32,130 nucleotides of DNA from Macrostomum lignano. Lineage: Eukaryota. A program made the position numbers and the translations under genes. This document shows positions 1,673 through 32,130 of this stretch, in pieces (the first letter of the stretch is position 1; every line of letters begins with the position of its first letter). A model generated the notes under the pieces. It made no database searches. It was not told the origin of the DNA and was given only the letters and a program-made list of their open reading frames with translations. The DNA lies in contig NIVC01004891.1 in the NCBI GenBank assembly GCA_002269645.1, forward strand, positions 1-32,130, given 5' to 3'.

Positions 1673-4600
1673 TTATTTCCTCTTAGTTTTACCCGTCCGG
1701 CCGCGCTCGAAGCGCACCGTCTCGGCCACCAATGACGTCATTTCGGACAGGCGCTGGCAGAAGGTGACAGCAGCTCCCACAGATGGATCTGAAAATCTGT
1801 ACTTTTCTGTGGGATTAAGGGCTTATTTTATAGCCATGATACCAGGAATCCGAGCTTTGAAACTGTTAAAGTTCAATCGTATCTTTTAAAAGACAGAAAA
1901 TTCTCCTCTGAGCTCACCTGCGCAGTTTGCTGCAGCCTGAGAATTACCGCTATTAGCCTGGGCTGACCTCCTGTTGCCATAGTAACGCGACGAATACGGC
2001 GAACCGTTTGGACGTCGCGAACTGGCGATGCCGGAGCAGCAGAAACTGCCTGCTGAGTCCTGATGCAGCCCGTCTGCTGCGGCTGCGTCACTCAGGGATG
2101 AGCCTACTGAGCCTGCGGAGTTGGAGTGAGTCAGTCAGTCAGTCAGTCAGTCAGTCAGTCAGTCAGTCAGTCAGTCAGTCAGTCATTCAGTCAGTCAGTC
2201 AGTCAGTCAGTCAGTCAGTCAGTCAGTCAGTCAGTCAGTCAGTCAGTCAGTCAGTCAGTCAGTCAGTCAGTCAGTCAGTCAGTCAGTCAGTCAGTCAGTC
2301 AGTCAGTCAGTCAGTCAGTCAGTCAGTCAGTCAGTCAGTCAGTCAGTCAGTCAGTCAGTCAGTCAGTCAGTCAGTCAGTCAGTCAGTCAGTCAGTCAGTC
2401 AGTCAGTCAGTCAGCTCACACTGCCTGGATGGCGGCAGTCCGTGGCCCGCAGGCCGGCCCTGTGTGACTGTCGTTGGCTCCCGCCGCTGCAGAACCAGCG
2501 ACTGCGCGGTTCGAATCTCCAGTAGTTCGCCAGCGCGACACCAGGCGGCTGCAGCGGCAGCGACTCCTGCCGGGGATTCCTGCGCTGCTGCCGCGGCTGC
2601 AGCTGCTGCGCCCCGCCGGCCTCGCCCTGCTGGCCGAACAGCAGCCGGCGCTCGCGGCGCCTCTCGCGCGAAGTCGGACGAGCTGTGGAGGCGTCGGCGC
2701 CGGTGGCAGCGGCTGCAGCGGCGGCGGCGACGGCGGCGGCTGAGGCCAGATCGTTGGTCGAGCGGGATGGAGCGATGCCGCTGCTGCGGGGGTCCGGGTT
2801 TGAATCCGCATTAGCCTGCGGTTCCCGCTCGAAAATTGACCCCACAACGAGGGCCGACCCCCCAAGGCACAGTGAGTGTACATGCCCGACAATGAGGAAG
2901 TCAGGGCGGCCGTAGTGTACACCCTGAGTGAGCCTGTGCCTGCGGACAAGATCCATAACTAACTAGCCTCGACTTGAAGATACTCGATAAGAGGCGGCTG
3001 TGGACTACTTTAAGTAGCACTCACCGTTGGTTCCGCCTAATGCTGAGCTGCTGCCCGGACAGCAGGTCAACCATCATGCCAGCTCTGCTTTGAGCTGGGC
3101 TGCTTATTTGTATGGATTTTGCTTCAACTAGAGTAGAAGAATGACGGAGAAGGCCACGCCGCACTTGCTGCTCTATACTCGTTCTGCTCACGCAAAGCCA
3201 TCCTGCAGCTCAAACCCCGGTGAATGGGCCGCCCAGTATATGTATGAGCCATTGGGATTATTGACTTGCCGTGGAGTGGCTTGGAGGGGAGGAGGGTAGA
3301 GAGGCAGGGAGACCCACGCAGACGGGCCGGCTGAATTGTCAACTCAGCGCCTCAAATAATCAGCAGCCAGTATTGCGTGAAATGCCATGAAACAATGAGA
3401 GAGGGTAGGCAGAGCTGGTACGGGCTTTCGCTGTGCGTATGGCCAGGGTGAGGCACCTCTGCGCTCCAGTAAGCTTCAGGAAATGTGCCTTGAGCAGAAG
3501 TACCTGGCTTGGGAAGGCGGCACGCTATGCAAGGGGATGGGGTTCTCCTGCACTAGGGAGGTTGAGACAGGCTCTGTTCCTCATCACGATAAGCCAGTCA
3601 ACGCCTAGCTCTTAGACTACATATTTTCCCATTAATATAATTGCCTTGCATGTGTCTAACTCTAACAGGTTTGATGAGCAGAGCTGATTAATCTTCTGTC
3701 TGTCTGTCTGTTGGGTTTGAGTAGATTGCCTACGCATTTAGGCCTTAGAAACTGTCACCAAATTGTAGAATGCATGTCTAACAGGCTGTAGAATCTATCT
3801 AACAGGCTGTAGAATCTGTCTAATCGGCTGTAGAATCAATCTAACAGGCTGTAGAATCAATCTAACAGGCTGTAGAATCTGTCTAATCGGCTGTAGAATC
3901 AATCTAACAGGCTGTAGAATCTATCTAACAGGCTGTAGAATCTATCTAACATGCTGTAGAATCTATCTAACAGGCTGTATAATCTATCTAACAGGCTGTA
4001 GAATCTATCTAACAGGCTGTAGAATCTGTCTAATCGGCTGTAGAATCAATCTAACAGGCTGTAGAATCTGTCTAATCGGCTGTAGAATCTGTCTAACAGG
4101 CTGTAGAATCTATCTAACAGGCTGTAGAATCTATCTAACATGCTGTAGAATCTATCTAACAGGCTGTATAATCTATCTAACAGGCTGTAGAATCTATCTA
4201 ACAGGCTGTAGAATCTATCTAACATGCTGTATAATCAATCTAACAGGCTGTAGAATCTATCTAACAGGCTGTAGAATCTGTCTAATCGGCTGTAGAATCA
4301 ATCTAACAGGCTGTAGAATCAATCTAACAGGCTGTAGAATCTATCTAACAGGCTGTAGAATCTATCTAACATGCTGTAGAATCTATCTAACAGGCTGTAT
4401 AATCTAACAGGCTGTAGAATCTATCTAACAGTCTGTAGAATCTATCTAACAGGCTGTAGAATCTAACAGGCTGTAGAATCTATCTAACAGGCTGTAGAAT
4501 CTATTTAACAGGCTGTAGAATATGTCTAACAGGCTGTAGAATCTATCCAACAGGCTGTAAGACATGACTACCAGGAATCTGAAAACTTTTAGTGAACCCC

Positions 4601-7600
4601 GAAACTGTACCGGTTTCCATGGCGACCAACAGCCGGAGCGGATCTGAAGCGGTTCCTACGGGAGCAGCAGCGCCTCAGTTGAGGCATCTTTTTACTTTGA
4701 CCAACCGCCGATGACAGCATTTGAGGTACCCTGCTGCTTCTGCTGCTGCTGCTGCTTCTGCTTCTTAGAACTGTAATTGCTTTTGTGTTCCCCTCATGTT
4801 GTTGGCAGACTCACTGCAGATATGCATGCAGCTCGTACTTCTCAAGAGGCTGCGCATGAGTAGCTCTCGCATGTTTGGGGTCAGGGATTGGTCGGTGTTT
4901 GAAGCGTGTCTCACTGTTCTCACTTCTCACTTGGTTTCTTTCACGCTTTTTCTACAGTTTCTCTCCTAGAAGCAAATAACACAGTTTCTGCACATGTACT
5001 TGCGCTGCATGTCAAGTAGGGCTTGAACAGAGTCGGTATTAGGGTTGGGGTTTGAGTTCTGCTCAGTTCTCATTTTCACACAATTTACTAATAATGTTAT
5101 TATATAACGCTTTTAGTAAGCGAAATTAATGTGTTTAGCTAGTTATATGAGTGTGAAATAATTAATCAGTATGGTTAGTGACCACGCTTAATTACTGTTA
5201 GTGACCGTTATTGAGAAAAGGCAGTCAGTGACCCCAGTGAGATCAAGCAGTCAGTGACCCATTCAGATCAAGCAGTGAGTGACCCCAGTGAGATCAAGCA
5301 CGCAGTGACCCCAGTCAGATCAAGCACGCAGTGACCCCAGTGAGATCAAGCAGTCAGTGACCCCAGTGAGATCAAGCACGCAGTGACCCCAGTCAGATCA
5401 AGCAGTCAGTGACCCCATCGAGATCAAGCACGCAGTGACCCCAGTCAGATCAAGCAGTCAGTGACCCCATCGAGATCAAGCACGCAGTGACCCCATTCAG
5501 ATCAAGCACGCAGTGACCCCAGTCAGATCAAGCACGCAGTGACCCCAGTGAGATCAAGCAGTCAGTGACCCCAGTGAGATCAAGCAGTCAGTGACCCATT
5601 CAGATCAAGCAGTGAGTGACCCCAGTGAGATCAAGCACGCAGTGACCCCAGTCAGATCAAGCACGCAGTGACCCCAGTGAGATCAAGCAGTCAGTGACCC
5701 CAGTGAGATCAAGCACGCAGTGACCCCAGTCAGATCAAGCAGTCAGTGACCCCATCGAGATCAAGCACGCAGTGACCCCAGTCAGATCAAGCAGTCAGTG
5801 ACCCCATCGAGATCAAGCACGCAGTGACCCCATTCAGATCAAGCACGCAGTGACCCCAGTCAGATCAAGCACGCAGTGACCCCAGTGAGATCAAGCAGTC
5901 AGTGACCCCAGTGAGATCAAGCAGTCAGTGACCCCAGTGAGATCAAGCACGCAGTGACCCCAGTCAGATCAAGCACGCAGTGACCCCAGTGAGATCAAGC
6001 ACGCAGTGACCCCAGTCAGATCAAGCACGCAGTGACCCCAGTGAGATCAAGCACGCAGTGACCCCAGTGAGATCAAGCACGCAGTGACCCCAGTCAGATC
6101 AAGCACGCAGTGACCCCAGTCAGATCAAGCACGCAGTGACCCCATGCGGACTGGGTGCAGCTGGCACCAATCATGCAGCTGCTGACTCACTCGCAAAGCA
6201 GTTCGTGAAATTCTGCCTTTTGCCGTTCGTACTGCGAACTGGAGAGCAGCTGCCTGCTGTGCCTGCCTGTCTCGCTGCTGAAAGCATTTGGTAGCACCGG
6301 GTGGTGTTTTCAGATGCAGTCCGAGACGCTGCTTTCACGCAGTATTTGCTACATGGTTTTGTATAAAAACTTTTAACCAGAAATTTTCTCGATCGCAAGT
6401 GCACAGGCAAATCTACTATGAGTAGCTAGTGATATTCAAGATAGGTAAAAGTAGATCAGAAGAATCGAACACCGGTTCTTTGGGCTTTTTTCAAAAACTT
6501 TAACGCAATCTGTCATGGACCACTAAAGTAGAAGGACTGCCCACTTTAGCCCGATCTGTCATGGACCACTAAAGTAGAAGGACTGCCCACTTTAGCCCGA
6601 TCTGTCATGGACCACTAGAGTAGAAGGACTGCCCACTTTAGCCCGATCTGTCATGGACCACTAAAGTAGGACTGCCCACTTTAGCCCGATCTGTCATGGA
6701 CCACTAAAGTAGAAGGACTGCCCACTTTAGCCCGATCTGTCATGGACTACTAAAGTAGAAGGATTGCCCACTTTAGCCCGATCTGTCATGGACCACTAAA
6801 GTAGAAGGACTGCCCACTTTAGCCCGATCTGTCATGGACCACTAAAGTAGAAGGACTGCCCACTTTAGCCCGATCTGTCATGGACCACTAAAGTAGAAGG
6901 ACTGCCCACTTTAGCCCGATCTGTCATGGACTACTAAAGTAGAAGGACTGCCCACTTTAGCCCGATCCGTCATGGACCACTAAAGTAGAAGGACTGCCCA
7001 CTTTAGCCCGATCTGTCATGGACTACTAAAGTAGAAGGATTGCCCACTTTAGCCCGATCTGTCATGGACCACTAAAGTAGAAGGACTGCCCACTTTAGCC
7101 CGATCTGTCATGGACCACTAAAGTAGAAGGACTGCCCACTTTAGCCCGATCTGTCATGGACCACTAAAGTAGAAGGACTGCCCACTTTAGCCCGATCTGT
7201 CATGGACCACTAAAGTAGAAGGACTGCCCACTTTAGCCCGATCTGTCATGGACCACTAAAGTAGAAGGACTGCCCACTTTAGCCCGATCTGTCATGGACC
7301 ACTAAAGTAGAAGGACTGCTAGTTTTTAAAGTGCTGTCGGAGACTGGCAAGCAAGCAAAGTTGCTGAACAATTTCATCTATTACCTATCTTTTTAGTGTC
7401 CGTTTTGTCACTTACGGATTTTTCGATTAAGAGCCTTCAGAAAGATTAAAAAGTAATAAGTCTATAAATCCGTACTTAGACTTCTAGAGGAGGGTCTAGA
7501 GGGTACGGCTACTGGGTCTTGAGTGAAGTAAAATCATTCAATCAGTCAATGGGCAGTCAATTGTCACTCAATGAGCAGTCAATGAGCAGTCAATGAGCAG

Positions 7601-13690: not shown

Positions 13691-14527
13691 GAGTGAGCAG
13701 TGGTTAAGCACAGAGTGAGCAGTGGTTAAGCACAGAGTGAGCAGTGGCTAAGCACAGAGTGAGCAGTGGTTAAGCACAGAGTGAGCAGTGGTTAAGCACA
13801 GAGTGAGCAGTGGTTAAGCACAGAGTGAGCAGTGGTTAAGCACAGAGTGAGCAGTGGTTAAGCACAGAGTGAGCAGTGGCTAAGCACAGAGTGAGCAGTG
13901 GTTAAGCACAGAGTGAGCAGTGGCTAAGCACAGAGTGAGCAGTGGTTAAGCACAGAGTGAGCAGTGGTTAAGCACAGAGTGAGCAGTGGTTAAGCACAGA
14001 GTGAGCAGTGGCTAAGCACAGAGTGAGCAGTGGTTAAGCACAGAGTGAGCAGTGGCTAAGCACAGAGTGAGCAGTGGTTAAGCACAGAGTGAGCAGTGGC
14101 TAAGCACAGAGTGAGCAGTGGTTAAGCACAGAGTGAGCAGTGGTTAAGCACAGAGTGAGCAGTGGTTAAGCACAGAGTGAGCAGTGGCTAAGCACAGAGT
14201 GAGCAGTGGTTAAGCACAGAGTGAGCAGTGGTTAAGCACAGAGTGAGCAGTGGTTAAGCACAGAGTGAGCAGTGGTTAAGCACAGAGTGAGCAGTGGCTA
14301 AGCACAGAGTGAGCAGTGGTTAAGCACAGAGTGAGCAGTGGTTAAGCACAGAGTGAGCAGTGGTTAAGCACAGAGTGAGCAGTGGTTAAGCACACAGTGA
14401 GCAGTGGCTAAGCACAGAGTGAGCAGTGGTTAAGCACAGAGTGAGCAGTGGTTAAGCACAGAGTGAGCAGTGGTTAAGCACAGAGTGAGCAGTGGCTAAG
14501 CACAGAGTGAGCAGTGGTTAAGCACAG
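13691..14527. repeat. Minisatellite, 22-bp unit GAGTGAGCAGTGG(T/C)TAAGCACA, ~38 copies
   Basis: Period 22, with essentially one dimorphic position. Confidence 0.97.
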
Positions 14528-14544
14528 ACGGTAGCACAATGATC

Positions 14545-17500: not shown

Positions 17501-18591
17501 CCAATGGCCAATGCTAAGAGTTACCCGATGCCCAATGCTCAGAGACCCTGTACACCCGATGCCCAATGCTCAGAGACCCTGTACACCCGATGCCTAATGC
17601 TCAGAGACCCTGTACATCTGATGCCCAATGCTCAGAGACCCTGTACACCCGATGCCTAATGCTCAGAGACCCTGTACACCGGATGCCTAATTCACAGCAG
17701 TGGCGTAGCCAGGATTTTCTTCTAGGGGGGGGGGGTCACAGTCAGTCACAGGCTCACAGCGGCAACCGGCTGGGGGGGGTCATGACCCCCATGACCCCTC
17801 CTTGGCTACGCCCCTGATTCTCAGAGACCCTGTACACCCGATGTCCTCAGAGACCCTGTATACTCAGAGACCCTGTACACCCGATGCCTAATTCTCAGAG
17901 ACCCTGTACACCCGATGCCTAATTCTCAGAGACCCTGTACACCCGATGCCTAATTCTCAGAGACCCTGTACACCCGATGCTAGTGCTTGAACTATAGAGA
18001 TATTCACTACTAAGAGGTCGAATGTGAATAACAAATTACAGAGGGAACTTACGTCGAATGGCGGTACATGGCTGCCGAAATTATAGGCTCTGAAGGCTGC
18101 AGCGGTGTGAAGTCTGCACGAATCCGGGAGGTCCTGCTCAAACACGGGGCAGCCCATGAGCTGGTGTTGCTGTTGTTGCTGCTGCTGCAGAAAGGCGGCA
18201 GCCGCGGCGGCGGCCTGCGCCGGAGAACAAGATGCCGCAGTCGACGAAACCGGCGGCGGCGGCGGCGGGGGGAGCAGCAGTTGATGTGGTAAATGCGGTG
18301 GCGGCGGCAGAGGCAGTGACGCCGGCGGGAACTGCGGACCGCCGGCACAGCCAGAGGCGGCAGCGGCAGCGGCAGCAGCAGCTGCTGCAAACTGCATCGG
18401 CAGTGGACCGAATGACGGAAGCATCAGTTGCTGCACAGGCGGCTGCATAAGGAGGCCGGCCGCGTTCAGCTGGTCAGCGAGAGGCACCGCCGACTGCTGC
18501 TGCTGCTGCTCAATATTGGCCGAGCTCACTGGCGAGTTTGGCAGGCTGCCAGGCTGGGAGGCGTAGCCAGACTCGACAGTTGTCTGTTGAG

Positions 18592-18625
<34 letters not shown>

Positions 18626-19076
18626 AAATATCGGCATTGGCAGGTAGAAGCTTGTTCCGGCCATCAGCGGCGGGGTTCTTGTTGGCGATGGCTGAGGATT
18701 AAACATTTGCCAATTTTGAATCGTCAATTAATGTCAGGCAAGGATTTTAGGCAGAAATTTCACGGAAAGAAAAATATTCAAGATTATTCATTGAACCGGT
18801 CTAGGACCTTGTAGCTCCTAGTTCACATCTTCCATGACTGAATTTGAAAATGAAAATTCCACACAGATACAAATCATTTTTGTTCACCTGACTCGAAGCG
18901 CCAGACGAGCACGGCGAGTCCGGATGCAGCATCGCATTGTTCGCTGCTGTTGGCGGCGGAGGCTGGAAGAACTGAGGCGGCGGCGGCGGCATGCGATGAT
19001 GCGGCGGCGGCGGCAGATGATGAGGCATTGGCAGCTGGCCTGGGTGCTGGTGCATCACTGGCGCCTGTACGTACAT
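14545..19076 (-). CDS. Multi-exon gene: poly-Q/P/A/H low-complexity N-terminus followed by divergent RRM-like domains (putative RNA-binding protein)
   Basis: Phase-consistent exons 19076-18888 (MYVQAP..SSQ), 18691-18053 (PSPTR..polyQ/A..HVPPFD), 17513-17465 (HWPLDRILKAFKSSGY), 17363-17238, 17190-~17100, then unresolved exons, then 15284-15047 (IVKWYSEKPPFILDGRTACL..), 14918-14545 (FIHIFFRERQDAE..NNVYITSVP..KRSAQVEFHRSEDANALI..KEQK*). RNP2/RNP1-like patterns (NVYITSV; AQVEF..EDA) were judged by eye. Confidence 0.75.
17524..17980. repeat. Minisatellite, 31-bp unit CCCGATGCC(C/T)AAT(G/T)CTCAGAGACCCTGTACA, ~11 copies, interrupted by a MITE
   Basis: Period 31 (17524, 17555). Located in the intron 17514-18052. 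Confidence 0.95.
17698..17816. mobile_element. 119-bp non-autonomous hAT-type MITE
   Basis: TIRs CAGTGGCGTAGCCAGG / CTTGGCTACGCCCCTG (14/16 match). 8-bp TSD ATTCACAG (17690-17697) / ATTCTCAG (17817-17824). An 8-bp TSD and CAG termini are typical of hAT. Confidence 0.85.
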
Positions 19077-19749: not shown

Positions 19750-22700
19750 GCAAACTGCTGAACTTCAATGCATAATGCCGCCGCCCCTCACTGTTCTGTA
19801 TGAGTAATAAACAGTGTGCAGATGGATAATAGCCTTCGTGCAGATTCGTCATTTCATCGTGCTCATCACGTGACTGACTCACACGCGGTGGCCAGTGCAC
19901 ATTTTGCTTTTGATTTTGTTATTTACAAATTTTAATGCACAAAATGAAATACTCAGATGAAAACTATTCAAAATATTTGACCACCTCAGTAGTTGACCCC
20001 CCTGACCACCTCAGTAGCTGCCCCCCTGACCACCTCAGCAGCTGACCCCCTCTGACCACCTCAGTAGCTGACCCCCTGACCACCTGAGTACATGTAGCTC
20101 CCCTTTGACCACCTCAGTAGCTGACCCCCTTTGACAACCTCAGTAGCTGACCCCCTTTGACCACCTCAATAGCTGACCCCCTTAGACAACCTCAGTAGCT
20201 GACCCCCTTTGACCACCTCAGTAGTTGACCCCCTCTGACCACCTCAGTAGCTGCCCCCCTCTGACCACCTCAGTAGTTGACCCCCCTGACCACCTCAGTA
20301 GCTGCCCCCCTCTGACCACCTCAGTAGTTGACCCCCCCTGACCACCTCAGTAACTGCCCCCCTCTGACCACCTCAGTAGCTGACCCCCTCTGACCACCTC
20401 AGTAGTTGACCCCTTTTGACCACCTCAGTAGCTGACCCCCTGACCACCTCAGTACATGTAGCTCCCCTTTGACCACCTCAGTAGCTGACCCCCTTTGACA
20501 ACCTCAGTAGCTGACCCCCTTTGACCACCTCAATAGCTGACCCCCTTAGACAACCTCAGTAGCTGACCCCCTTTGACCACCTCAGTAGCTGACCCCCTTT
20601 GACCACCTCAATAGCTGACCCCCTTAGACAACCTCAGTAGCTGACCCCCTTTGACCACCTCAATAGCTGAACCCCTTAGACAGCCTCAGTAGCTGACCCC
20701 CTTTGACCACCTCAATAGCTGAACCCCTTAGACAGCCTCAGTAGCTGACCCCCTTTGACAACCTCAGTAGCTGACCCCCTTTGACAACCTCAGTAGCTGA
20801 CCCCCTATGACAACCTCAGTAGCTGACCCCCTTTGACCACCTCAGTAGCTGACCCCCTTTGACCACCTCAGTAGCTGACCCCCTTTGACTACCTCAGTAG
20901 CTGACCCCCTGACCACCTCAGTAGCTGCCCCTCTGATCACCTCAGTAGCTGACCCCCTCTGACCACCTCAGTAGCTGACCCCTTTGACCACCTCAGTAGC
21001 TGACCCCCTTTAACCCCCTCAGTACATGTAGCTCCCCTTTGACCACCTCAGTAGCTGACTCCTCTGACCACCTCAGTAGCTGACCCCTTTTGACCACCTC
21101 AGTAGCTGACCCATTTTGACCACCTCAGTAGCTGACCCCCTTTGACCACCTCAGTAGCTGACCCCTTTTGACCACCTCAGTAGCTGACCCCCTGACCACC
21201 TCAGTACATGTAGCTCCCCTTTGACCACCTCAGTAGCTGACCCCCTTTGACAACCTCAGTAGCTGACCCCCTTTGACCACCTCAGTAGCTGACCCCCTTT
21301 GACAACCTCAGTAGCTGACCCCCTTTGACAACCTCAGTAGCTGCCCCCCTCTGACCACCTCAGTAGCTGACCCCCTTTGACAACCTCAGTAGCTGACCCC
21401 CTTTGACCACCTCAGTAGCTGACCCCCTTTGACCACCTCAGTAGCTGACCCCCTAACCACCTCAGTACATGTAGCTCCCCTTTGACCACCTCAGTAGCTG
21501 ACCCCCTTTGACCACCTCAGTAGCTGACCCCCTTTGACAACCTCAGTAGCTGACCCCCTTTGACAACCTCAGTAGCTGACCCGGAATAAAAAGAGTTCTG
21601 CAACTCTGCAACAAACAACTCGGTCTCTCCACAGTGTTCGCAGACAGGAAAAGATAAGGTCACACAGAACTGACGCAATTGTCCTGGAGCCAAATCTCTG
21701 TCTGGTGAGCCGATTCCTTATTCTCCAATTCTCACAATTCCAAGGAGCCATATAACCAGAGCCTGGAGAGCCCTTCCACTAAACCTTTATTTTTAAAAAG
21801 CGCATTTTTAAAAATGATGAAGTCTATGTAACTTTTAGGTTTTGTGATGAATTTTGGCATAAAGTATATATACATTCGGAAAAAACTCAAACTCGAATCC
21901 ACTAACAATAGAGTTGGCTCTTCAGTTTCCAGTTTTAAGGCGTCCCCTCCCTCCACCGCCTGACAAAGAATCAAAAAAGAGGATACGAGAAGCGGAATTC
22001 CGTTCGGGCTATTAGAATGGACCCTGAAAGCTGCAGAACATAAAGTATAACCAGCTTTATTTACATTATACAATGGCTTTTGGTCTCTAATGCGTTTTTC
22101 GTGGGAATTTTTAAGATCCAGGTGCATGCTCGATGCAGCATAATATGCTCGGGACTCGTGGTAATCATATGGGTTATGTTTATGAATTTTATAATTTATA
22201 TAGCATTAAAACAAACACAAGCCACCTTTCATATTCCCGTACATACAATGGCAATCATTTATTGTAGAATGACTCAAATATCTCACATATCTTCTCCACA
22301 GAGAATCTCACCAGGAGATTTCAGTGGAGAGAAGATCGTCTCACAGAGAATCTCACATGGGAGATTTACAGTGGAGAGATCAAGATCGTCTCACAGAGAA
22401 TCTCACATGGAGATTTGCAGTGAAGAGAAGATCGTCTCACAGAGAATCTCACATGGAGATTTGCAGTGAAGAGAAGATCGTCTCACAGAGAATCTCACCT
22501 GGAGAATGGACATTTACAGCGATGAAGAAAAGTTGTTTATTGCTGAATAAACTTAGTTTTGATAAGATTAAAAGCTTTATAAATCTAAGTTGAATTTCCG
22601 GGAAATGATTTGACTTTTGATTTGTCTGTTTATTTCTTCAGTAACATTTTGTCTATTAATAATAATTTATATAAAGCTGCGCATAAAAGCGAATGAAAGC

Positions 22701-23730: not shown

Positions 23731-24107
23731 CTGCACAGGAAAGCAAGGCGGAAACAGATAGTCACATTATTATATATAGTCTAATCTTTTAACGGCATAC
23801 ACGATAACGCAATGGGTTCATTAGAGAGCGCTAGGTAGCATACTAGATAAGTATTATATAAACTAATTCCATATCTACTGCCTATACAGACTGATCAAGT
23901 GTAAACAAAACAGTTTTGGCAATGCTAATAACTGTTACTATGGCTAGTTGCTGGCCCAGAGACCATTGAATACGCAGGCGTATGATGGGGCATCATTGCG
24001 CCCCATTGTGAGCTGATAGTTTTAAGAATTCAAAATATCCTGTTTATCAATTTTAACTGATCGACACTGAATGTTTTGCTTACGTCATAGTGGCATTCTA
24101 GGGTTCA

Positions 24108-24653
24108 AGAAGCTTGGGTTTTATGGCACTGTTGAGTTCATGCAGCATGGGTTTTATGACACTGTTGAGTTCATGCAGCTTGGGTTTTATGACACTGTTG
24201 AGTTCATGCAGCATGGGTTTTATGACACTGTTGAGTTCATGCAGCATGGGTTTTATGACACTGTTGAGTTCATGCAGCATGGGTTTTATGACACTGTTGA
24301 GTTCATGAAGCATGGGTTTTATGACACTGTTGAGTTCATGCAGCATGGGTTTTATGACACTGTTGAGTTCATGCAGCATGGGTTTTATGACACTGTTGAG
24401 TTCATGAAGCATGGGTTTTATGACACTGTTGAGTTCATGCAGCTTGGGTTTTATGACACTGCTGAGTTCATGCAGCATGGGTTTTATGACACTGTTGAGT
24501 TCATGCAGCATGGGTTTTATGACACTGTTGAGTTCATGCAGCTTGGGTTTTATGACACTGCTGAGTTCATGCAGCATGGGTTTTATGACACTGTTGAGTT
24601 CATGCAGCATGGGTTTTATGACACTGTTGAGTTCATGCAGCTTGGGTTTTATG
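24108..24653. repeat. Minisatellite, 33-bp unit ATGCAGCATGGGTTTTATGACACTGTTGAGTTC, ~16.5 copies
   Basis: The unit is 11 codons, giving repeat ORFs on both strands (MQHGFYDTVEF / MLHELNSVIKP). Confidence 0.96.
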
Positions 24654-25072
24654 AAATACTAAGCTCACTAAGCTTGGTTGTGATGACACTTCTGGCTCAA
24701 AAACAGACAGAAAAGAAAAACATAAACATAAAGTAGAAACGCAAACAGCTTCACTAAAATGTACCAATAGCCTTCCTCTTGTTCGAGAAAAATAAATTCA
24801 TTGTACAGAAAAACTGGAATGCCGATGGCTGCTTCTATTAATAGAAACTCAGCTCGTATTATTTCTAAAAACTGGAATTTGTCTCACATTGACAGACTAT
24901 GAGGGAACTTTCATCTCAACTTTATTTCTTAATTAGCTACTCAGAACATAACATCTTTAAAACGAAAGAAAGAAGTTCGAATGAATAATAAAAACTGAAA
25001 TTCGGCATTTTAGTTTTCAGGCTCACCGCTAATGGAGCCGGGAGAATATATAGATAGATAGATAGATAGATA

Positions 25073-26395
25073 CTGGGTGATTGGTAAAAATCTGGACATT
25101 TTTATTTGTTTTAGCAAGACAACAATAAACAAATTGAACACATGTCTTTTAACTTGGCTTAAGTTCAATATATAAGGGATTGTCTGGCTCATTGCCAAAC
25201 GGCTCCGACACCATTAGCCCGAGCTCGGCGAATCCCGGACTTGACATTGGTCATCATCTCCTGTACACAGTGCAGATCCACCTGGCGGAGGCAGTAGCGA
25301 ATGCGATTTTCCAGCTGTTCCAGACTGTCCGTCGTCCAATTGTGATGGTAAACCTTTTGCTTCAACATCCCCCAGAAGTTCTCAATTGGTCGCAGCTGTG
25401 GTACATTGGGAGGATTGAGCTCCTTGCTGACAAAATTGACACCTTCCTCTTCAAATGTGTCAATGACGTCACGAGCATAGTGACAGCTCGCCAGGTCAGG
25501 CCAGAACAGGTAGTTGCCGTCAGCATGCTGTTCCTTAATAAATGGCAATAGACGCTTGTGAATGCACTCTCTTATGTAGATCTCTTTGTTCATTGAGCTG
25601 CCGTGGCAGAAGAAGACCTTGGACATGCCCTTCTTGCTGATGGCCAGCCAGACCAAGACTTTGGCCTCAAATTTCTTGCTGGGTGAACACCTAACCTCAT
25701 CAGGTGCATCACCTCGAGCTGTTGCATAATAGAACCTGTTACCAGGGATGACATTGTATGACAGAGTAGTACGATTCATCGTCCATGACAATTTCCAGTC
25801 CGCCGTCATCTCCTGCCAGCACAGCACGGTAGAGCCTGTCAATCCTCACACGCTGGCGCTCTTTCTGCTCAAACGACACAAATGGCACTTTTTCTTTCTT
25901 GTATGCACTTAGTCCCTGCTTCTTGAGAATCTCGTTGACGTACGGCTGGCTGATGTCATATTTGCGTGCAATTTCGCGCTGGGACAGACCCGTCCTGGCA
26001 TCATTTGACATCTTCTCCATCAAAGTGGCAGTGACCTTGGTAGCTGGTCGTCCTGACCCTCCTTCCGTAGCACAGAATCTTCTCCAGTTGCTGAGTAGCG
26101 ATCCAGAATTCCATAAATGGTTGATCTTGGGACACCAAGCTCAGCAAAATATTTTGCGATTGCATTGTTGCTCAGCCCAGGGTGCTCAATTTTATATTGT
26201 ACAACCAGTTTACGCCGCTGCTCTTCATTTAGAGACTGCATCTCAGACGTGACGGGGCAAACAAGTGAAAAAAACAACTTAAGTTGTGAGGAAGACCCCC
26301 AGTATTGCTCAAAAGCATCAGCTCAATAAATTTGCCTCGTTAAATTTTGTCTATGGCAAAAACTAACCATGTCCAGATTTTTACCAATCACCCAG
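25073..26395 (-). mobile_element. Full-length IS630-Tc1-mariner transposon, DD37E (ITmD37E-like) class, 1323 bp
   Basis: Perfect 27-bp TIRs CTGGGTGATTGGTAAAAATCTGGACAT (25073-25099 / 26369-26395). TA TSD at 25071-72 and 26396-97. Inserted in a (TAGA)n run. Confidence 0.95.
25189..26241 (-). pseudogene. DD37E transposase with two frameshifts (~26057, ~25768)
   Basis: HTH region (GLSNNAIAK..PRSTIY; GLSQREIARK), G(S)GRP linker, MDDESY first Asp, FWPDLASCH second Asp, PPNVPQLRPIE Glu. 37 residues counted between D and E. Split across ORFs 26020..26277, 25739..26023 and 25189..25842, with no internal stops. Confidence 0.92.
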
Positions 26396-27911: not shown

Positions 27912-30255
27912 TCAGTGCGGTCGGGACACCTGAGGCTGTGCAGCCGCGGACTCGGACAGGTGGCGGGCAGTTTTGCCGTTGGAGCGGCCCCGCCTTGCGA
28001 CCTTACTTGGCGACGCCTGGGTGGCCTCGGCCGCGAAGTCGCGAATGCGGGGCACCATGAGCTCAACGGCCACCAGGTTCTCCGGGCCGCGCGGCAGCAC
28101 CAAATCCGCGTACTTCTTTGTCGGCAGGCAGAAGCCTTCGAAGGCCGGCTTCACGAATTCGGTATGGTAGTTCAGGGTGGACACAAGGCTGCGGCCTCTG
28201 GCCAGGTCCGTGCGGACTCGCCTGGGGGATTGGCGAGTGGGGACAGCAAGCGCCAGTCAACAATTCAGTTACCAATAGACAGCAAAAATCAGAAGAGATT
28301 AACAACCAGTAATCTACAGCAGCCAATGTCAATATCGAAAATCAACAACCAATTAACAACAAACTCAAATCAACAGCAACCAACACAAATCAACAAAAAA
28401 CAAAACAAATCAAGTTAATCAACAACCAACACAAATCAACAACAACCAACACAAATCAACAACAAACACAAATCAACAACCAACACAAATCAGCAACCAA
28501 CACAAATCAACAACAACCAACACAAATCAACAACCAACACAAATCAACAACCAACACAAATCAACAATCAACACAAATCAAGTTAAACAACAACCAACAC
28601 AAATCAACAACAACCAACACAAATCAACAACCAACACAAATCAACAATCAACACAAATCAACAACCAACACAAATCAAGTTAATCAACAATCAACACAAA
28701 TCAAGTTAAACAATAACCAACACAAATCAACAACAACCAACACAAATCAACAACAACCAACACAAATCAACAACCAACACAAATCAACAACCACCAACAC
28801 AAATCAACAACAACCAACACAAATCAACAATCAACAAAAAACAACCAACACAAATCAACAACAACCAACACAAATCAACAACAAACACGATTAAACAACA
28901 ACGAACAACACAGATCAACAACGACAAACAGAAATCAACAACCAACAACACAAATCAGCAGCAACCAACATAAATCAACAGCAACCAACACAGATCAGCA
29001 ACAACCAAATCAAATTAACAACAAACAACACAAAACAATAACAACCAACACAAATCAACAAACAACACAATTCAACAGCAACAAACACAAATCAACAACC
29101 AACACAAAACAATAACAACCAACACAAATTAACAACTAACACAAATCAACAATCAACACATCAACAACAACCAACAACACAAATCAACAACAACCAATAA
29201 CACAAATCAGCAACAATCAACAACACAAATCAGCAACAACCAACACAAATCAACAACAAGCACCACACAAATCAACAACAACCAACAACACAAATCAACA
29301 ACAAACAACACAAATCAACAATCAATGGACACTCAACACACTATCGAACAGCAACATGACCAATAAATAAAACAGCCAAACCTGGCCAGCCGAGTGTCAG
29401 AGTCGCAGTCCACAAACAGCTTAACGTCGAACAGGTCCCGCAGCCGGGGCTGATAGAATAGCAGAATGCCTTTCACGAGCAGCACATCGACAAGAGCCAG
29501 CTCCCTGTGCCGCTGCTGGGCAGCCGCCAAGCTCAAGCTGGGATCGTACTCGGCCACTCGAACCGGCTTGCCCATGCGGGCGTCTTGCAAAGTCGACACC
29601 ATCAGGTCGAAGTCGAAAGCGTCTGGACCGGCCATTTGTAATTTTTTTGGGGATTAGAGTAAGTTGGGAGATTTTAGGGATTTGAGTAGATTCGGGAGAT
29701 TTTGATATTCCAGTAGATTTGGGAGATTTGGGGATTCGAATAGATTTGGGAGATTTTGAGGAATCGAGTAGATTGGGAGATTTTGGGGATTCGAGTAGAT
29801 TTGGGAGATTTTGGGGATTAGAATATATTTGGGAGATTTTGAGGAATCGAGTAGATTGGGAGATTTTGGGGATTCGATTGGTTTAGGACATATCGGGGAT
29901 TTGATCAGGTTGGGAGAATCTGGAGACTTAAGTAGATACATTATGAGAGATTTGAATGCCTTGGGATTTCAGAGACTCAATTCGCATGTCACAATGCTAC
30001 AAAGGATACAAAGGTAATAAAAGTATGATACAAGCAGATGCACAAAAGGTGAAAGCCCACCACAATTGCAGCCTACACAAATCGTTACTGAGTAGAATTA
30101 CCTGGATGATCAAAATTAAACAAGCCAGCTTGAGCTGCCTTTCTTTCCTCATCTGTCAGCCTCCGATAGAATGAGCTCATGCTAAGCATGTCCACCCGAC
30201 TGGACAGCTGACCGGGCCCAGACAGCTGCTGCATGATGCGTTCGCATACGGAGGT
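27912..30255 (-). CDS. UCK: Uridine-cytidine kinase family protein (UCK1/2-like), 3 exons, P-loop exon not found, active-site residues substituted
   Basis: Exons 30255-30102 (TSVCERIMQQL..LSMSSFYRRLTDEERKAAQAGLFNFDHP), 29622-29382 (DAFDFDLM..VKGILLFYQPRLRDLFDVKLFVDCDSDTRLAR), 28221-27912 (RVRTDLARGR..FVKPAFEGFCLPTKKYADLVLPRGPENLVAV..SRPH*). GT-AG sites with phases 0/1/2 consistent. Motifs NFDHPDAFD, KLFVD.D.DTRL.RR and FVKPAF..FCLPTKKYAD are diagnostic of UCK. Confidence 0.92.
28341..29328. repeat. CAA-rich degenerate repeat (CAACAACCAACACAAAT-like units) in a UCK intron
   Basis: Plus strand almost G-free for ~1 kb. Confidence 0.92.
29655..29895. repeat. Degenerate ~27-28-bp repeat (TCGAGTAGATTTGGGAGATTTTGGGGAT-like) in a UCK intron
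   Basis: Visible period ~27 (29764, 29791). Confidence 0.85.
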
Positions 30256-30339
30256 CTGTTGGATGAGTGCGGGAATGACAGAATCAGAACCGGTTGACTC
30301 TCAGGCGTAAGCAATAGGCATTCCGCTTGCACTGCCGAT

Positions 30340-31565
30340 AAGGGCAGATTCTCTCAGCAACCAAGCGCAGATTCTCTCAGAAACCAAGGGCAGATTCTCT
30401 CAGAAACCAAGGGCAGATTCTCTCAGCAACCAAGGGCAGATTCTCTCAGCAACCAAGGGCAGATTCTCTCAGCAACCAAGGGCAGATTCTCTCAGCAACC
30501 AAGGGCAGATTCTCTCAGCAACCAAGGGCAGATTCTCTCAGCAACCAAGCGCAGATTCTCTCAGCAACCAAGGGCAGATTCTCTCAGCAACCAAGGGCAG
30601 ATTCTCTCAGCAACCAAGCGCAGATTCTCTCAGAAACCAAGGGCAGATTCTCTCAGAAAACAAGGGCAGATTCTCTCAGCAACCAAGCGCAGATTCTCTC
30701 AGCAACCAAGGGCAGATTCTCTCAGCAACCAAGCGCAGATTCTCTCAGAAACCAAGGGCAGATTCTCTCAGAAACCAAGGGCAGATTCTCTCAGCAACCA
30801 AGGGCAGATTCTCTCGGAAACCAAGGGCAGATTCTCTCAGCAACCAAGGGCAGATTCTCTCAGAAACCAAGGGCAGATTCTCTCAGAAACCAAGGGCAGA
30901 TTCTCTCAGAAACCAACATCAATCACGGGCAGATTTTCTCAGAAACCAACATCAATCACGGGCAGATTCTCTTAGAAACCAAGGGCAGATTCTCTCAGAA
31001 ACCAACATCAATCACGGGCAGATTCTCTCAGAAACCAAGGGCAGATTCTCTCAGTAACCAAGGGCAGATTCTCTCAGCAACCAACATAAATCACGGCCAG
31101 ATTCTCTTAGAAACCAACATCAATCACCGCCAGATTTTCTCAGAAACCAACATCAATCACGGGCAGATTCTCTCAGAAACCAAGGGCAGATTCTCTCAGT
31201 AACCAAGGGCAGATTCTCTCAGAAACCAAGGGCAGATTCTCTCAGAAACCAACATCAATCACGGGCAGATTCTCTCAGTAACCAAGGCAGATTCTCTCAG
31301 CAACCAACATAAATCACGGCCAGATTCTCTTAGAAACCAACATCAATCACGGCCAGATTTTCTCAGAAACCAACATCAATCACGGGCAGATTCTCTCAGA
31401 AACCAAGGGCAGATTCTCTCAGTAACCAAGGGCAGATTCTCTCAGAAACCAAGGGCAGATTCTCTCAGAAACCAACATCAATCACGGGCAGATTCTCTCA
31501 GTAACCAAGGGCAGATTCTCTCAGCAACCAACATAAATCACGGCCAGATTCTCTTAGAACCAACC
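30340..31565. repeat. Minisatellite, 23-bp unit GGGCAGATTCTCTCAG(C/A)AACCAA, mixed with a 33-bp derivative (+CATCAATCAC) from ~30910 onward
   Basis: Period 23 (30424, 30447) and 33 (30927, 30960). Confidence 0.96.
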
Positions 31566-32130
31566 TTAAAAAAACCTCAAACAGATTATCTGTATCTCTT
31601 GTCCAACACCATTTTTAGAAGTCAACGGTTCAAAAGTTGAGTAGCTGTGAAGCTGCAGCCATAGACAACTGGCAGGCTTACAGAATTACTACAAGAACTA
31701 GAGAGTTTTTGTAAGCAGCACATCTAGGCACTGATGTCATGAATTGCACATAAACAGATTATCTATCTATTAACTAATAAAAACATCTAACATAGCAATG
31801 GAAAATGTGAAAATCGAGGAACTACTATTTGTATCAATTATCACGCCTGCTATTCTGGTCAGTATGATGCTAATTGGAGGAAGCTGCTACCTGATTGCAT
31901 CTTCAATTGCTAATGGAAAAAAAGAAAACCTGAGCTAAGCACTAACTGCAATAAACTGTAATGCTAATGTAACTGATAGATTGACTTTAATATTGAACTA
32001 TGTACTATTGTTATTAAATGTTGTTTGCATACTTTGTCTTGTTTTTTATTTTTCTTGTTATGGAAATTAAAAAAAACTTACTCTGTAAATGTAATGAAAC
32101 AGTAAAAAATATTTCTATGAGTAAAGAAAT

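Follow-up and report, generated by a model that had tools for sequence, protein, structure and literature searches.

A selectively maintained uridine-cytidine kinase homologue of Macrostomum lignano without key catalytic residues, and its place among flatworm UCK2-type proteins lacking the catalytic aspartate

Gene structure and copies of the locus

The window, that is the whole stretch of DNA analysed here, is a single 32,130-bp contig of the free-living flatworm Macrostomum lignano. Between positions 27912 and 30255 it carries, on the minus strand, exons 2–4 of a four-exon UCK2-type uridine-cytidine kinase (UCK) gene, annotated on the contig as BOX15_Mlig009424g2 and hereafter referred to as type A. 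A first-pass annotation of this DNA had described three in-frame, properly spliced exons, and this description holds: AG acceptors and GT donors are found throughout, and the phases join into a single ORF of 234 codons (Table 1). Exon 1 (MSANNKRTILIGVAGGSSSGK), whose P-loop is intact, falls off the contig and hence outside the window: in L006, the copy from the same haplotype, 5.5 kb separate it from exon 2 on the upstream side, and the window holds just 1.9 kb there. The P-loop, GVAGGSSSGKT, is intact in L006 as well as in the sister copies L001 and L005.

Table 1. Exons and introns of the type A gene in the window (residues in type A numbering).
Feature	Position	Strand	Content
Intron 1, 3' part	30256..32130	(-)	reaches the contig end; mostly 23/33-bp minisatellite (30340-31564)
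Exon 2	30102..30255	(-)	residues 22-72 and first base of codon 73; helix after the P-loop, LSMSSFY, NFDHP with Asp84 kept
Intron 2	29623..30101	(-)	27-bp minisatellite at 29645-29877
Exon 3	29382..29622	(-)	remainder of codon 73 to codon 153, split with exon 4; degenerate base-recognition hairpin EYDPSLSLAAAQQ, VLLVKGIL
Intron 3	28222..29381	(-)	nearly all 20-bp (AACAACCAACACAAATCAAC)n minisatellite, 28355-29321
Exon 4	27912..28221	(-)	residues 153-255 and stop (TGA 27914-27912); RRVRTD, RGR, LNYH, AFEGF, LPTKKYAD, low-confidence tail, C-terminal SRPH

The full type A protein is 255 amino acids long, consists of a PRK domain only, and ends in SRPH. The Pfam PRK/uridine kinase family (PF00485) matches it with an E-value of 1.7e-29 for the part encoded in the window and 1.2e-36 for the full length, and the window product matches human UCK2 (PDB 1xrj) with an E-value of 2e-54. 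It has no C-terminal UPRTase-like domain, and hence is not of the UCKL1 type by domain content.

The DV1 assembly (GCA_002269645.1), which is partly duplicated, contains four copies of type A that are nearly identical; SNPs diagnostic for the copies lie at codons 26, 45, 63, 147, 216, 230 and 231. The window copy and two sister copies have an undisturbed ORF and intact splice sites throughout. In the copy L006, 1 bp is deleted within a C run, 9 nt ahead of the stop codon. The BOX15 annotation derives from transcripts, since the GenBank submission used a genome-guided assembly of RNA-seq data (PMC5730564). This transcript support applies to the type A copies jointly, as reads are not assignable to the window copy as opposed to its 99%-identical sisters. 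The supplements of two papers on M. lignano gave no expression values for Mlig gene identifiers. The transcript-derived annotation, together with the residue and selection analyses below, identifies the window gene as a real, transcribed and selectively maintained UCK-like gene without key catalytic residues.

Changed and retained active-site residues

Human residue numbers were set by HMMER alignment to PDB 1xrj. This alignment confirms both the UCK2 numbering used in the first-pass annotation and every substitution that it had listed, as well as the retained NFDHPDAF, RGR, FVKPAF..LPTKKYAD and C-terminal SRPH motifs. In LSMSSFY, Gln61 is replaced by Met and Asp62 by Ser (codon AGC, 30177-30175), while VLLVKGIL carries Glu135Lys (AAA, 29473-29471). 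The YDPSLS hairpin keeps Tyr112, but Phe114 is replaced by Pro, there is no His or Asn at position 117 (Ser or Leu there), and one residue is inserted. RRVRTD keeps Arg166, with Leu168Arg and Arg169Thr (ACG, 28211-28209); the LID has therefore lost Arg169 but has an Arg one position earlier, and keeps Arg174 and Arg176 (RGR). LNYH corresponds to Gln184Tyr and Tyr185His (CAT, 28166-28164), and AFEGF to Glu195Gly. Exon 2 also encodes a macrostomid-specific Asp at human position 57 (GAC, 30192-30190).

The ribose 2'/3'-OH ligands Asp84 and Arg166 (the ribose clamp) are both present in type A, as is the aromatic base pocket formed by Tyr65, Phe83 and Tyr112. The conservation of the P-loop, the ribose ligands and two LID arginines is what would be seen in a working phosphotransferase, and runs against the kinase-impaired reading favoured below.

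In UCK2, Asp62 is the general base, and together with Ser34 and Glu135 it is also a Mg2+ ligand (PMC9163393; see also PMC6274218 on UCK residue roles). A D62A mutant of UCK2 has been made and used as a catalysis-deficient variant (PMC7718876). I surveyed these positions in 313 sequences, comprising 164 non-macrostomid hits (a first, insect-rich set) and 149 others. Position 62 is Asp or Glu in 163 of the 164 hits and position 169 is Arg in all 164; position 135 is Glu in 164/164 and in 139/149 of the other sequences, and Lys in none; position 185 is Tyr in 164/164, and Tyr or Trp in 313/313. As these four positions are near-invariant, their changes in type A are far beyond chance. Glu135Lys and Tyr185His are peculiar to type A, neither being found in the 313 other sequences checked, and so are Glu195Gly and the missing Asn/His117. 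In contrast, Asn is the commonest residue at position 117 (134/164 of the insect-rich set), and Gln184 is also variable; since neither His117 nor Gln184 is invariant, these two losses carry little weight. The proposed loss of catalytic residues thus stands for Asp62, Glu135, Arg169 and Tyr185. With the base and two of the three Mg2+ ligands gone, type A is probably incapable of phosphorylating uridine or cytidine at a useful rate.

Loss of Asp62 across flatworm UCK2-type proteins

The first-pass annotation had pictured one dismantled paralogue beside a canonical one. This picture is not supported by the comparison with other flatworm proteins. The only other UCK2-type paralogue found in M. lignano, type B (PAA69524), is ∼59% identical to type A and also carries Ser62 and Thr169. 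When 5.8 billion proteins were searched for further macrostomid-type members with a profile of types A, B and P0006, the only hits were those of M. lignano itself and a single Logan transcript (run SRR30276812); in the tree, the type A paralogue predates the split from the SRR30276812 species, and type A is the older of the two macrostomid UCK2-type paralogues. Arg169 is replaced by Thr or Ser in all three macrostomid sequences, with type B and the SRR30276812 transcript sharing the Arg168-Thr/Ser169 arrangement and Asp57 with type A.

Asp62 is missing from 18/18 flatworm UCK2-type proteins retrieved (Macrostomum, trematodes, cestodes), where position 62 is mostly Ser, and Tyr in cyclophyllidean cestodes. 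These proteins, from type B to those of Opisthorchis, Fasciola, Schistosoma, Echinococcus and others, are all auto-annotated as 'uridine/cytidine kinase', and all 18 have Ser/Tyr62, Val/Ile134 and Leu208. A C-terminal RPH is a further feature that type A shares with this group. Unlike type A, the other flatworm proteins keep Glu135 and Tyr185, and Lys135, His185 and Gly195 occur in type A only. Judged from these sequences, the loss of Asp62 is flatworm-wide among the UCK2-type proteins retrieved, and not gene-specific. What is specific to this gene is limited to Glu135Lys, Tyr185His, Glu195Gly and the Ser at position 117, and the Asp62 and Arg169 changes are shared with its flatworm and macrostomid relatives, respectively. 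Type A is the most degenerate member of the flatworm UCK2-type clade rather than a lone oddity.

These comparisons also bear on whether the odd residues could be sequencing or assembly artefacts, which I consider practically inconceivable. The assembly is a long-read one with indel errors, but the changes are substitutions, and they recur identically in the four copies of the assembly as well as in separate M. lignano entries of UniProt; they are therefore not read errors, as had been proposed from the window alone. Furthermore, the Ser62 codon is AGC in both M. lignano paralogues as well as in the transcript from another species, and any Asp codon is two steps away from it.

Outside the flatworms, two further UCK2-type proteins without Asp62 were identified, B0001.4 from Caenorhabditis elegans (Q17413; SLHSFY, with Arg169Thr as well) and A0A177B9Y8 from Intoshia linei (GMSSYY). 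In contrast to type A, both keep Glu135 and Tyr185. They fall outside the flatworm group in the tree, and their loss of Asp62 is possibly independent of that in flatworms. No characterisation of either protein was found in the literature.

Purifying selection on type A

Three type A haplotypes differ at 6 synonymous and 3 non-synonymous codons. All 3 non-synonymous differences are within the low-confidence C-terminal tail (codons 216–231), and the kinase domain shows 4 synonymous and 0 non-synonymous differences. A neutral expectation, derived from the non-coding flanks and introns (41/1420 sites variable) on a conservative estimate, is 12.0 non-synonymous and 3.9 synonymous changes in the domain, against the 0 and 4 observed (P = 6e-6). 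Domain dN/dS is 0.22 between types A and B and 0.29 between type A and P0006, and estimates overall range from 0.17 to 0.29, far from the ∼1 of a plain pseudogene. The type A gene is under purifying selection. Tajima relative-rate counts for types A and B are 17.4 and 17.5, which rules out a faster evolution of type A.

A recently relaxed duplicate had been offered as the alternative for this locus, and purifying selection leads me to reject it. In its general form, in which type A is a duplicate turning into a pseudogene and its substitutions are neutral decay, this explanation is very improbable. It could draw on the more numerous hits to invariant columns in type A than in type B, namely Pro to Ala at residue 96 and His to Arg at residue 211 (both in type A numbering), along with the changes at 135, 185 and 195, and on the deletion in L006. 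However, that deletion lies within a C run of a PacBio assembly, the gene is intact in three copies, and the haplotypes lack the dozen or so non-synonymous domain changes expected under neutrality. Moreover, although type A arose before the SRR30276812 species split off, it has evolved at the same overall rate as type B.

Fold and comparison with known systems

Type A is ∼49% identical to human UCK2 (PDB 1UJ2, 1UEJ, 1XRJ) and UCK1 over the domain, and shares with them the P-loop, NFDHP, RGR, FVKPAFE.F.LPTKKYAD and the C-terminal SRPH, but lacks their Asp62, Glu135 (Lys), Arg169, Tyr185, Phe114 and His117. An AF2 model of type A has a mean pLDDT of 80 and target-normalised TM scores of 0.85–0.90 to human UCK2 structures. 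In agreement with the first-pass annotation, type A is thus predicted to keep the UCK fold, with low model confidence in the base-recognition hairpin.

It is conceivable that type A acts on a new substrate or by a new chemistry, for instance on another nucleoside analogue or metabolite, or on an acceptor requiring no general base. The rebuilt hairpin (Phe114Pro, no His/Asn117, a one-residue insertion, low model confidence) would fit such a change, as would the retained P-loop on the ATP side, the retained ribose ligands and the maintained selection. However, the loss of two Mg2+ ligands speaks against any ATP-dependent phosphotransfer, and there is no fused domain or informative neighbour at the locus hinting at another pathway, which makes this explanation improbable.

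An inactive UCK-fold domain has been described in the N-domain of Schizosaccharomyces pombe Tad2 (PDB 7EEY), in which key residues are replaced; it is inactive on uridine and cytidine, and is required for the stability and function of the Tad2 complex (PMC8217354). This domain was recovered with type A both by sequence search and by fold search. By analogy, it may serve as a precedent for an inactive UCK-fold protein that is still needed. It differs from type A in several respects, being only ∼22% identical, fused to a deaminase and confined to Schizosaccharomyces, and lacking Arg166 and Arg176, both of which type A has.

The UCKL1-type proteins (human UCKL1 and Schistosoma mansoni G4VLZ9) possess a PRK/uridine kinase domain homologous to that of type A. 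In contrast to the single-domain type A, they carry a UPRTase domain at the C-terminus, and their set of canonical catalytic residues is complete. In G4VLZ9, with its PRK and UPRTase domains, the kinase domain is fully canonical.

Discussion

The residue replacements at Asp62, Glu135, Arg169 and Tyr185, in a gene that is intact and under purifying selection, would on sequence grounds place type A among the pseudoenzymes. The best reading, which I hold with confidence and doubt in about equal measure, is that of an old paralogue under selection that still binds a nucleoside or nucleotide but is impaired as a kinase. Type A would then most likely persist as a nucleoside/nucleotide binder without catalysis; it might sense a ligand or serve as a subunit that does not catalyse, mixed tetramers with type B being one example. 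The uridine/cytidine kinase activity of flatworms would probably reside in the UCKL1-type enzyme, which in S. mansoni keeps every canonical residue.

This has to be weighed against the possibility that type A and all flatworm Ser62 UCK2-type proteins are still working uridine/cytidine kinases. Catalysis would be relocated or different, e.g., by substrate-assisted or water-mediated deprotonation, with Lys123 replacing the Mg2+-Glu135 pair in charge neutralisation. Selection has maintained Ser62 in the flatworm proteins retrieved, and efficient incorporation of cytidine has been described for intact S. mansoni (el Kouni and Naguib 1990, cited in PMC6128611), so these proteins may be kinases with another base or mechanism. 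The retention of the P-loop, Asp84, Arg166, Arg174 and Arg176 and the strong purifying selection on type A point the same way. In addition, the motif reads SL[TSH]DFY in several homologues from early-diverging fungi, where the Asp stands one position later; this resembles a migrated residue and shows that the position can shift. However, the macrostomid SMSSFY motif has no acid at positions 61–63, and no compensating acidic residue is newly conserved across all flatworm UCK2-type proteins compared. The D62A mutant of human UCK2 was built as catalysis-deficient, type A has also lost Glu135 and Tyr185, and a canonical kinase domain is on hand in the flatworm UCKL1-type proteins. On balance I consider working kinases unlikely, less so than a new substrate. 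Type A could nonetheless retain some activity. Literature searches found no activity-assay data for type A, and no paper on 5-ethynyluridine or fluoropyrimidine labelling in Macrostomum.

More broadly, I propose tentatively, with rather more doubt than for the kinase-impaired reading of type A, that the flatworm UCK2-type proteins are an ancient clade without the catalytic Asp, which has been maintained alongside a canonical kinase of the UCKL1 type over hundreds of millions of years. The clade would either have found a new catalytic solution to nucleoside phosphorylation or be a pseudo-enzyme throughout the phylum, its role being non-metabolic, and type A would be its most extreme, fully non-catalytic member, acting as a pyrimidine nucleoside/nucleotide sensor or regulatory subunit.

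UCK is the rate-limiting enzyme of pyrimidine nucleoside salvage, and it activates many nucleoside drugs and labels, among them 5-ethynyluridine and the fluoropyrimidines. For type A itself the news is more modest, this being the most degenerate member of its clade. If the loss of the base holds across flatworms, a naturally occurring, selectively maintained UCK pseudo-enzyme would be at hand. Non-catalytic roles have been reported for human UCK2, and since M. lignano is experimentally tractable (RNAi, transgenesis), such roles could be studied in this animal. If UCK2-type proteins lack the catalytic base flatworm-wide, then the 'uridine/cytidine kinase' labels in databases, including those for schistosomes and tapeworms, may be wrong, and metabolic reconstructions would need to reassign the activity to the UCKL1-type enzyme.

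Gene structure and genomic context

The UCK2-type gene studied here (type A) had been read in the first-pass annotation as three in-frame, properly spliced exons, and this holds: all AG and GT sites are present, and the exons form a single 234-codon ORF in which the split codons G/AC (Asp) and AG/G (Arg) join cleanly. The product matches Pfam PRK/uridine kinase and human UCK2 (E 2e-54), and the protein search gives 99–100% matches from the free-living flatworm Macrostomum lignano. In GCA_002269645.1 the gene already has an annotation (PAA46378.1, BOX15_Mlig009424g2, 227 aa), under the automatic name 'uridine/cytidine kinase'. It is cut by the contig end, leaving exon 1 outside the window; in the sister copies this exon (MSANNKRTILIGVAGGSSSGK, P-loop intact) lies 5.5–6.1 kb upstream of exon 2, where the window has only 1.9 kb.

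Four copies of type A (the window, L006, L001 and L005) were identified in the assembly, together with three of a paralogue, type B (e.g. PAA69524), at ∼59% identity, in line with the redundancy already described for the DV1 assembly (PMC5730564). No substitution separates the window from L006 over ∼3.3 kb, and the two represent one haplotype. In L006 (BOX15_Mlig009424g1) a CCC run at ∼9914 has a 1-bp deletion, 9 nt ahead of the stop, turning the QVSRPH-stop ending into a 279-aa product; the alternatives are an assembly error and a true frameshift of the last three residues. Type B possesses five exons and type A four, the extra type B intron (L003, L004, L007) splitting an exon left single in type A. 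A DUF4551 gene always adjoins these type B loci, on the opposite strand.

Tandem repeats make up ∼38% of the contig, as many unrelated minisatellites with periods of 11–46 bp and near-perfect copies, and fill all three type A introns seen in the window. A Tc1/mariner-type transposase remnant is found ∼2 kb downstream of the gene, and a further ORF corresponds to a 484-aa neighbour gene called in L001.

Features of the contig
Feature	Position	Strand	Remarks
Type A exon	30255-30102	-	AG acceptor, GT donor
Type A exon	29622-29382	-	AG acceptor, GT donor
Type A last exon	28221-27912	-	AG acceptor; ORF end SRPH-TGA
DDE_3 transposase match, 217-aa ORF	25189-25842	-	PF13358, E 2e-6, just below gathering score
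Poly-Gln, poly-Ala, Pro-rich 256-aa ORF	17957-18727	-	no Pfam match
Tandem repeats, examples	173-516; 3764-4559; 5226-6144; 6497-7319; 13691-14528; 19976-21582; 24103-24654		
(AGTC)n run	2125-2414		290 bp

Active-site residues

Human UCK2 numbering was assigned through HMMER alignment to PDB 1xrj, and every substitution previously listed against human UCK2 is present in type A. They are not read errors, since each of the four assembled copies, and separate UniProt entries as well, show the same active-site residues. Their weight differs, as judged on the 164 UCKs from outside the macrostomids that the first two homologue searches gave. Position 62 is D/E in 163 of these, and positions 135 (E), 169 (R) and 185 (Y) are invariant (164/164); position 114 is aromatic in 159. 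In contrast, position 117 is mostly Asn (134/164; His in only 20) and position 184 is variable, and the reported losses of His117 and Gln184, while real as changes, therefore mean little. Type A retains Tyr65, Phe83, Asp84, Tyr112, Arg166, Arg174 and Arg176, and its AF2 model (mean pLDDT 80; TM up to 0.90 to UCK2, normalised to target) agrees with the earlier proposal that the UCK fold is kept. All macrostomid sequences have an Asp at position 57 (RVDMLS; window 30190-30192, -), within strand beta2, a position occupied by Val or Ile in other UCKs.

Shared and type A-specific losses

The SMSSFY and RRVR[TS]D motifs are also found in type B and in P0006, a transcript from another macrostomid species (Logan run SRR30276812), and all three use AGC for Ser62 (window 30175-30177 in type A). 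Type A branches outside type B and P0006 in a neighbour-joining tree (support 100%), and is thus an old paralogue predating that speciation.

When 1.84 billion cluster representatives were searched exhaustively, ∼10% of the diverse UCK-like clusters had no acid at position 62; among those named were liver flukes, Intoshia, C. elegans B0001.4 and a number of early-diverging fungi. The trematode and cestode UCK2-type proteins, recovered with an Opisthorchis seed, all read LSLS[SAT]FY or LSLYSFY, so that none has Asp62: the residue (P0239, P0329-P0346) is Ser in trematodes, Mesocestoides and Schistocephalus, and Tyr in cyclophyllidean cestodes. All are auto-annotated as uridine/cytidine kinase, and all the neodermatan ones show Arg166->Lys and a conserved Glu directly after the P-loop GK[ST]. 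The dismantled active site first proposed for this gene is real in its losses, but that of Asp62 is common to all 18 flatworm UCK2-type proteins retrieved, and the change at 169 to the three macrostomid sequences. A single origin of the Asp62 loss in flatworms would fit the shared Leu208 (18/18; Ile in 90/91 others) and Val/Ile134 (18/18), with bootstrap support for an all-flatworm clade of only 36%.

Beyond flatworms, C. elegans B0001.4 (Q17413, P0326, 'probable uridine-cytidine kinase') carries SLHSFY (Asp62->His) and RNRLATY (Arg169->Thr), and the orthonectid Intoshia linei (P0256) GMSSYY (Asp62->Ser) and Arg166->Ile; in these lineages, likewise fast-evolving, the losses may have arisen independently. 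In P0262, P0267, P0294, P0300 and P0311 (early-diverging fungi and one JGI sequence) SL[TSH]DFY replaces SQDSFY, and the Asp, one position later, looks like a migrated catalytic residue.

What belongs to type A alone is Lys135 and His185, seen in none of 313 other sequences surveyed (Glu135 and Tyr185 being retained by all other flatworm sequences), Glu195Gly, Ser for Asn at 117, and His->Arg in the VQHI motif.

A canonical domain is present beside a Ser62 UCK2-type protein in at least one flatworm: S. mansoni G4VLZ9 (P0309, XP_018653103.1; 565 aa) has PRK and UPRTase domains, the UCKL1 architecture, and is canonical at Asp62, His117, Glu135, Arg166, Arg169, Arg174, Arg176, Gln184 and Tyr185. 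Its RefSeq name, 'ethanolamine-phosphate cytidylyltransferase', is thus likely a misannotation of a UCKL1-type uridine kinase.

Selection and transcription

Across the 702 coding bases common with the window, the three type A haplotypes (window/L006, L001, L005) differ at six synonymous and three non-synonymous codons, the latter (216, 230, 231) all in the low-confidence tail. The kinase domain shows 4 synonymous and 0 non-synonymous changes, against 3.9 and 12.0 expected from the rate in introns and flanks (41/1420 aligned, repeat-masked sites variable; Poisson P = 6e-6). Domain dN/dS is 0.22 for A vs B, 0.29 for A vs P0006 and 0.15 for B vs P0006, with dS near saturation (1.1–1.3), and types A and B score alike in relative-rate counts against 23 outgroups (17.4 and 17.5). 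The recently relaxed duplicate offered earlier as an alternative is rejected, and type A is not decaying. The gene models were built from genome-guided RNA-seq assembly (PMC5730564), and the type A locus family is therefore transcribed; reads are not assignable to a single copy.

Functional implications

In UCKs, Asp62 is the proposed general base and holds Mg2+ with Ser34 and Glu135 (PMC9163393), Arg169 contacts the gamma-phosphate (PMC6274218), and UCK2 D62A has been used as a catalysis-deficient mutant (PMC7718876). In type A two of the three Mg2+ ligands are missing, as are the general base and Arg169, and the hairpin for base recognition has been remodelled; P-loop, ribose clamp and fold are retained.

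As the chief alternative, proteins with Ser62 may have remained active kinases. In favour of this, Ser62 is old and conserved, cytidine salvage is efficient in S. mansoni according to PMC6128611 (citing el Kouni and Naguib 1990), and the Asp has apparently moved by one position in some fungal homologues. Even then type A, which carries Lys135 and His185, would be the least probable of these proteins to be active. The literature search found no description of a flatworm UCK2-type protein without the catalytic base, and no UCK pseudo-enzyme except the UCK-fold domain of S. pombe Tad2.

The sequence evidence is solid, but the headline loss, that of Asp62, is not unique to this gene. The most economical reading of these sequences is that type A would bind ligand but be impaired as a kinase, and be retained for a function other than catalysis, for which there is precedent both in the Tad2 domain, inactive but functionally required (PMC8217354), and in human UCK2, for which functions independent of catalysis have been reported (PMC7718876).
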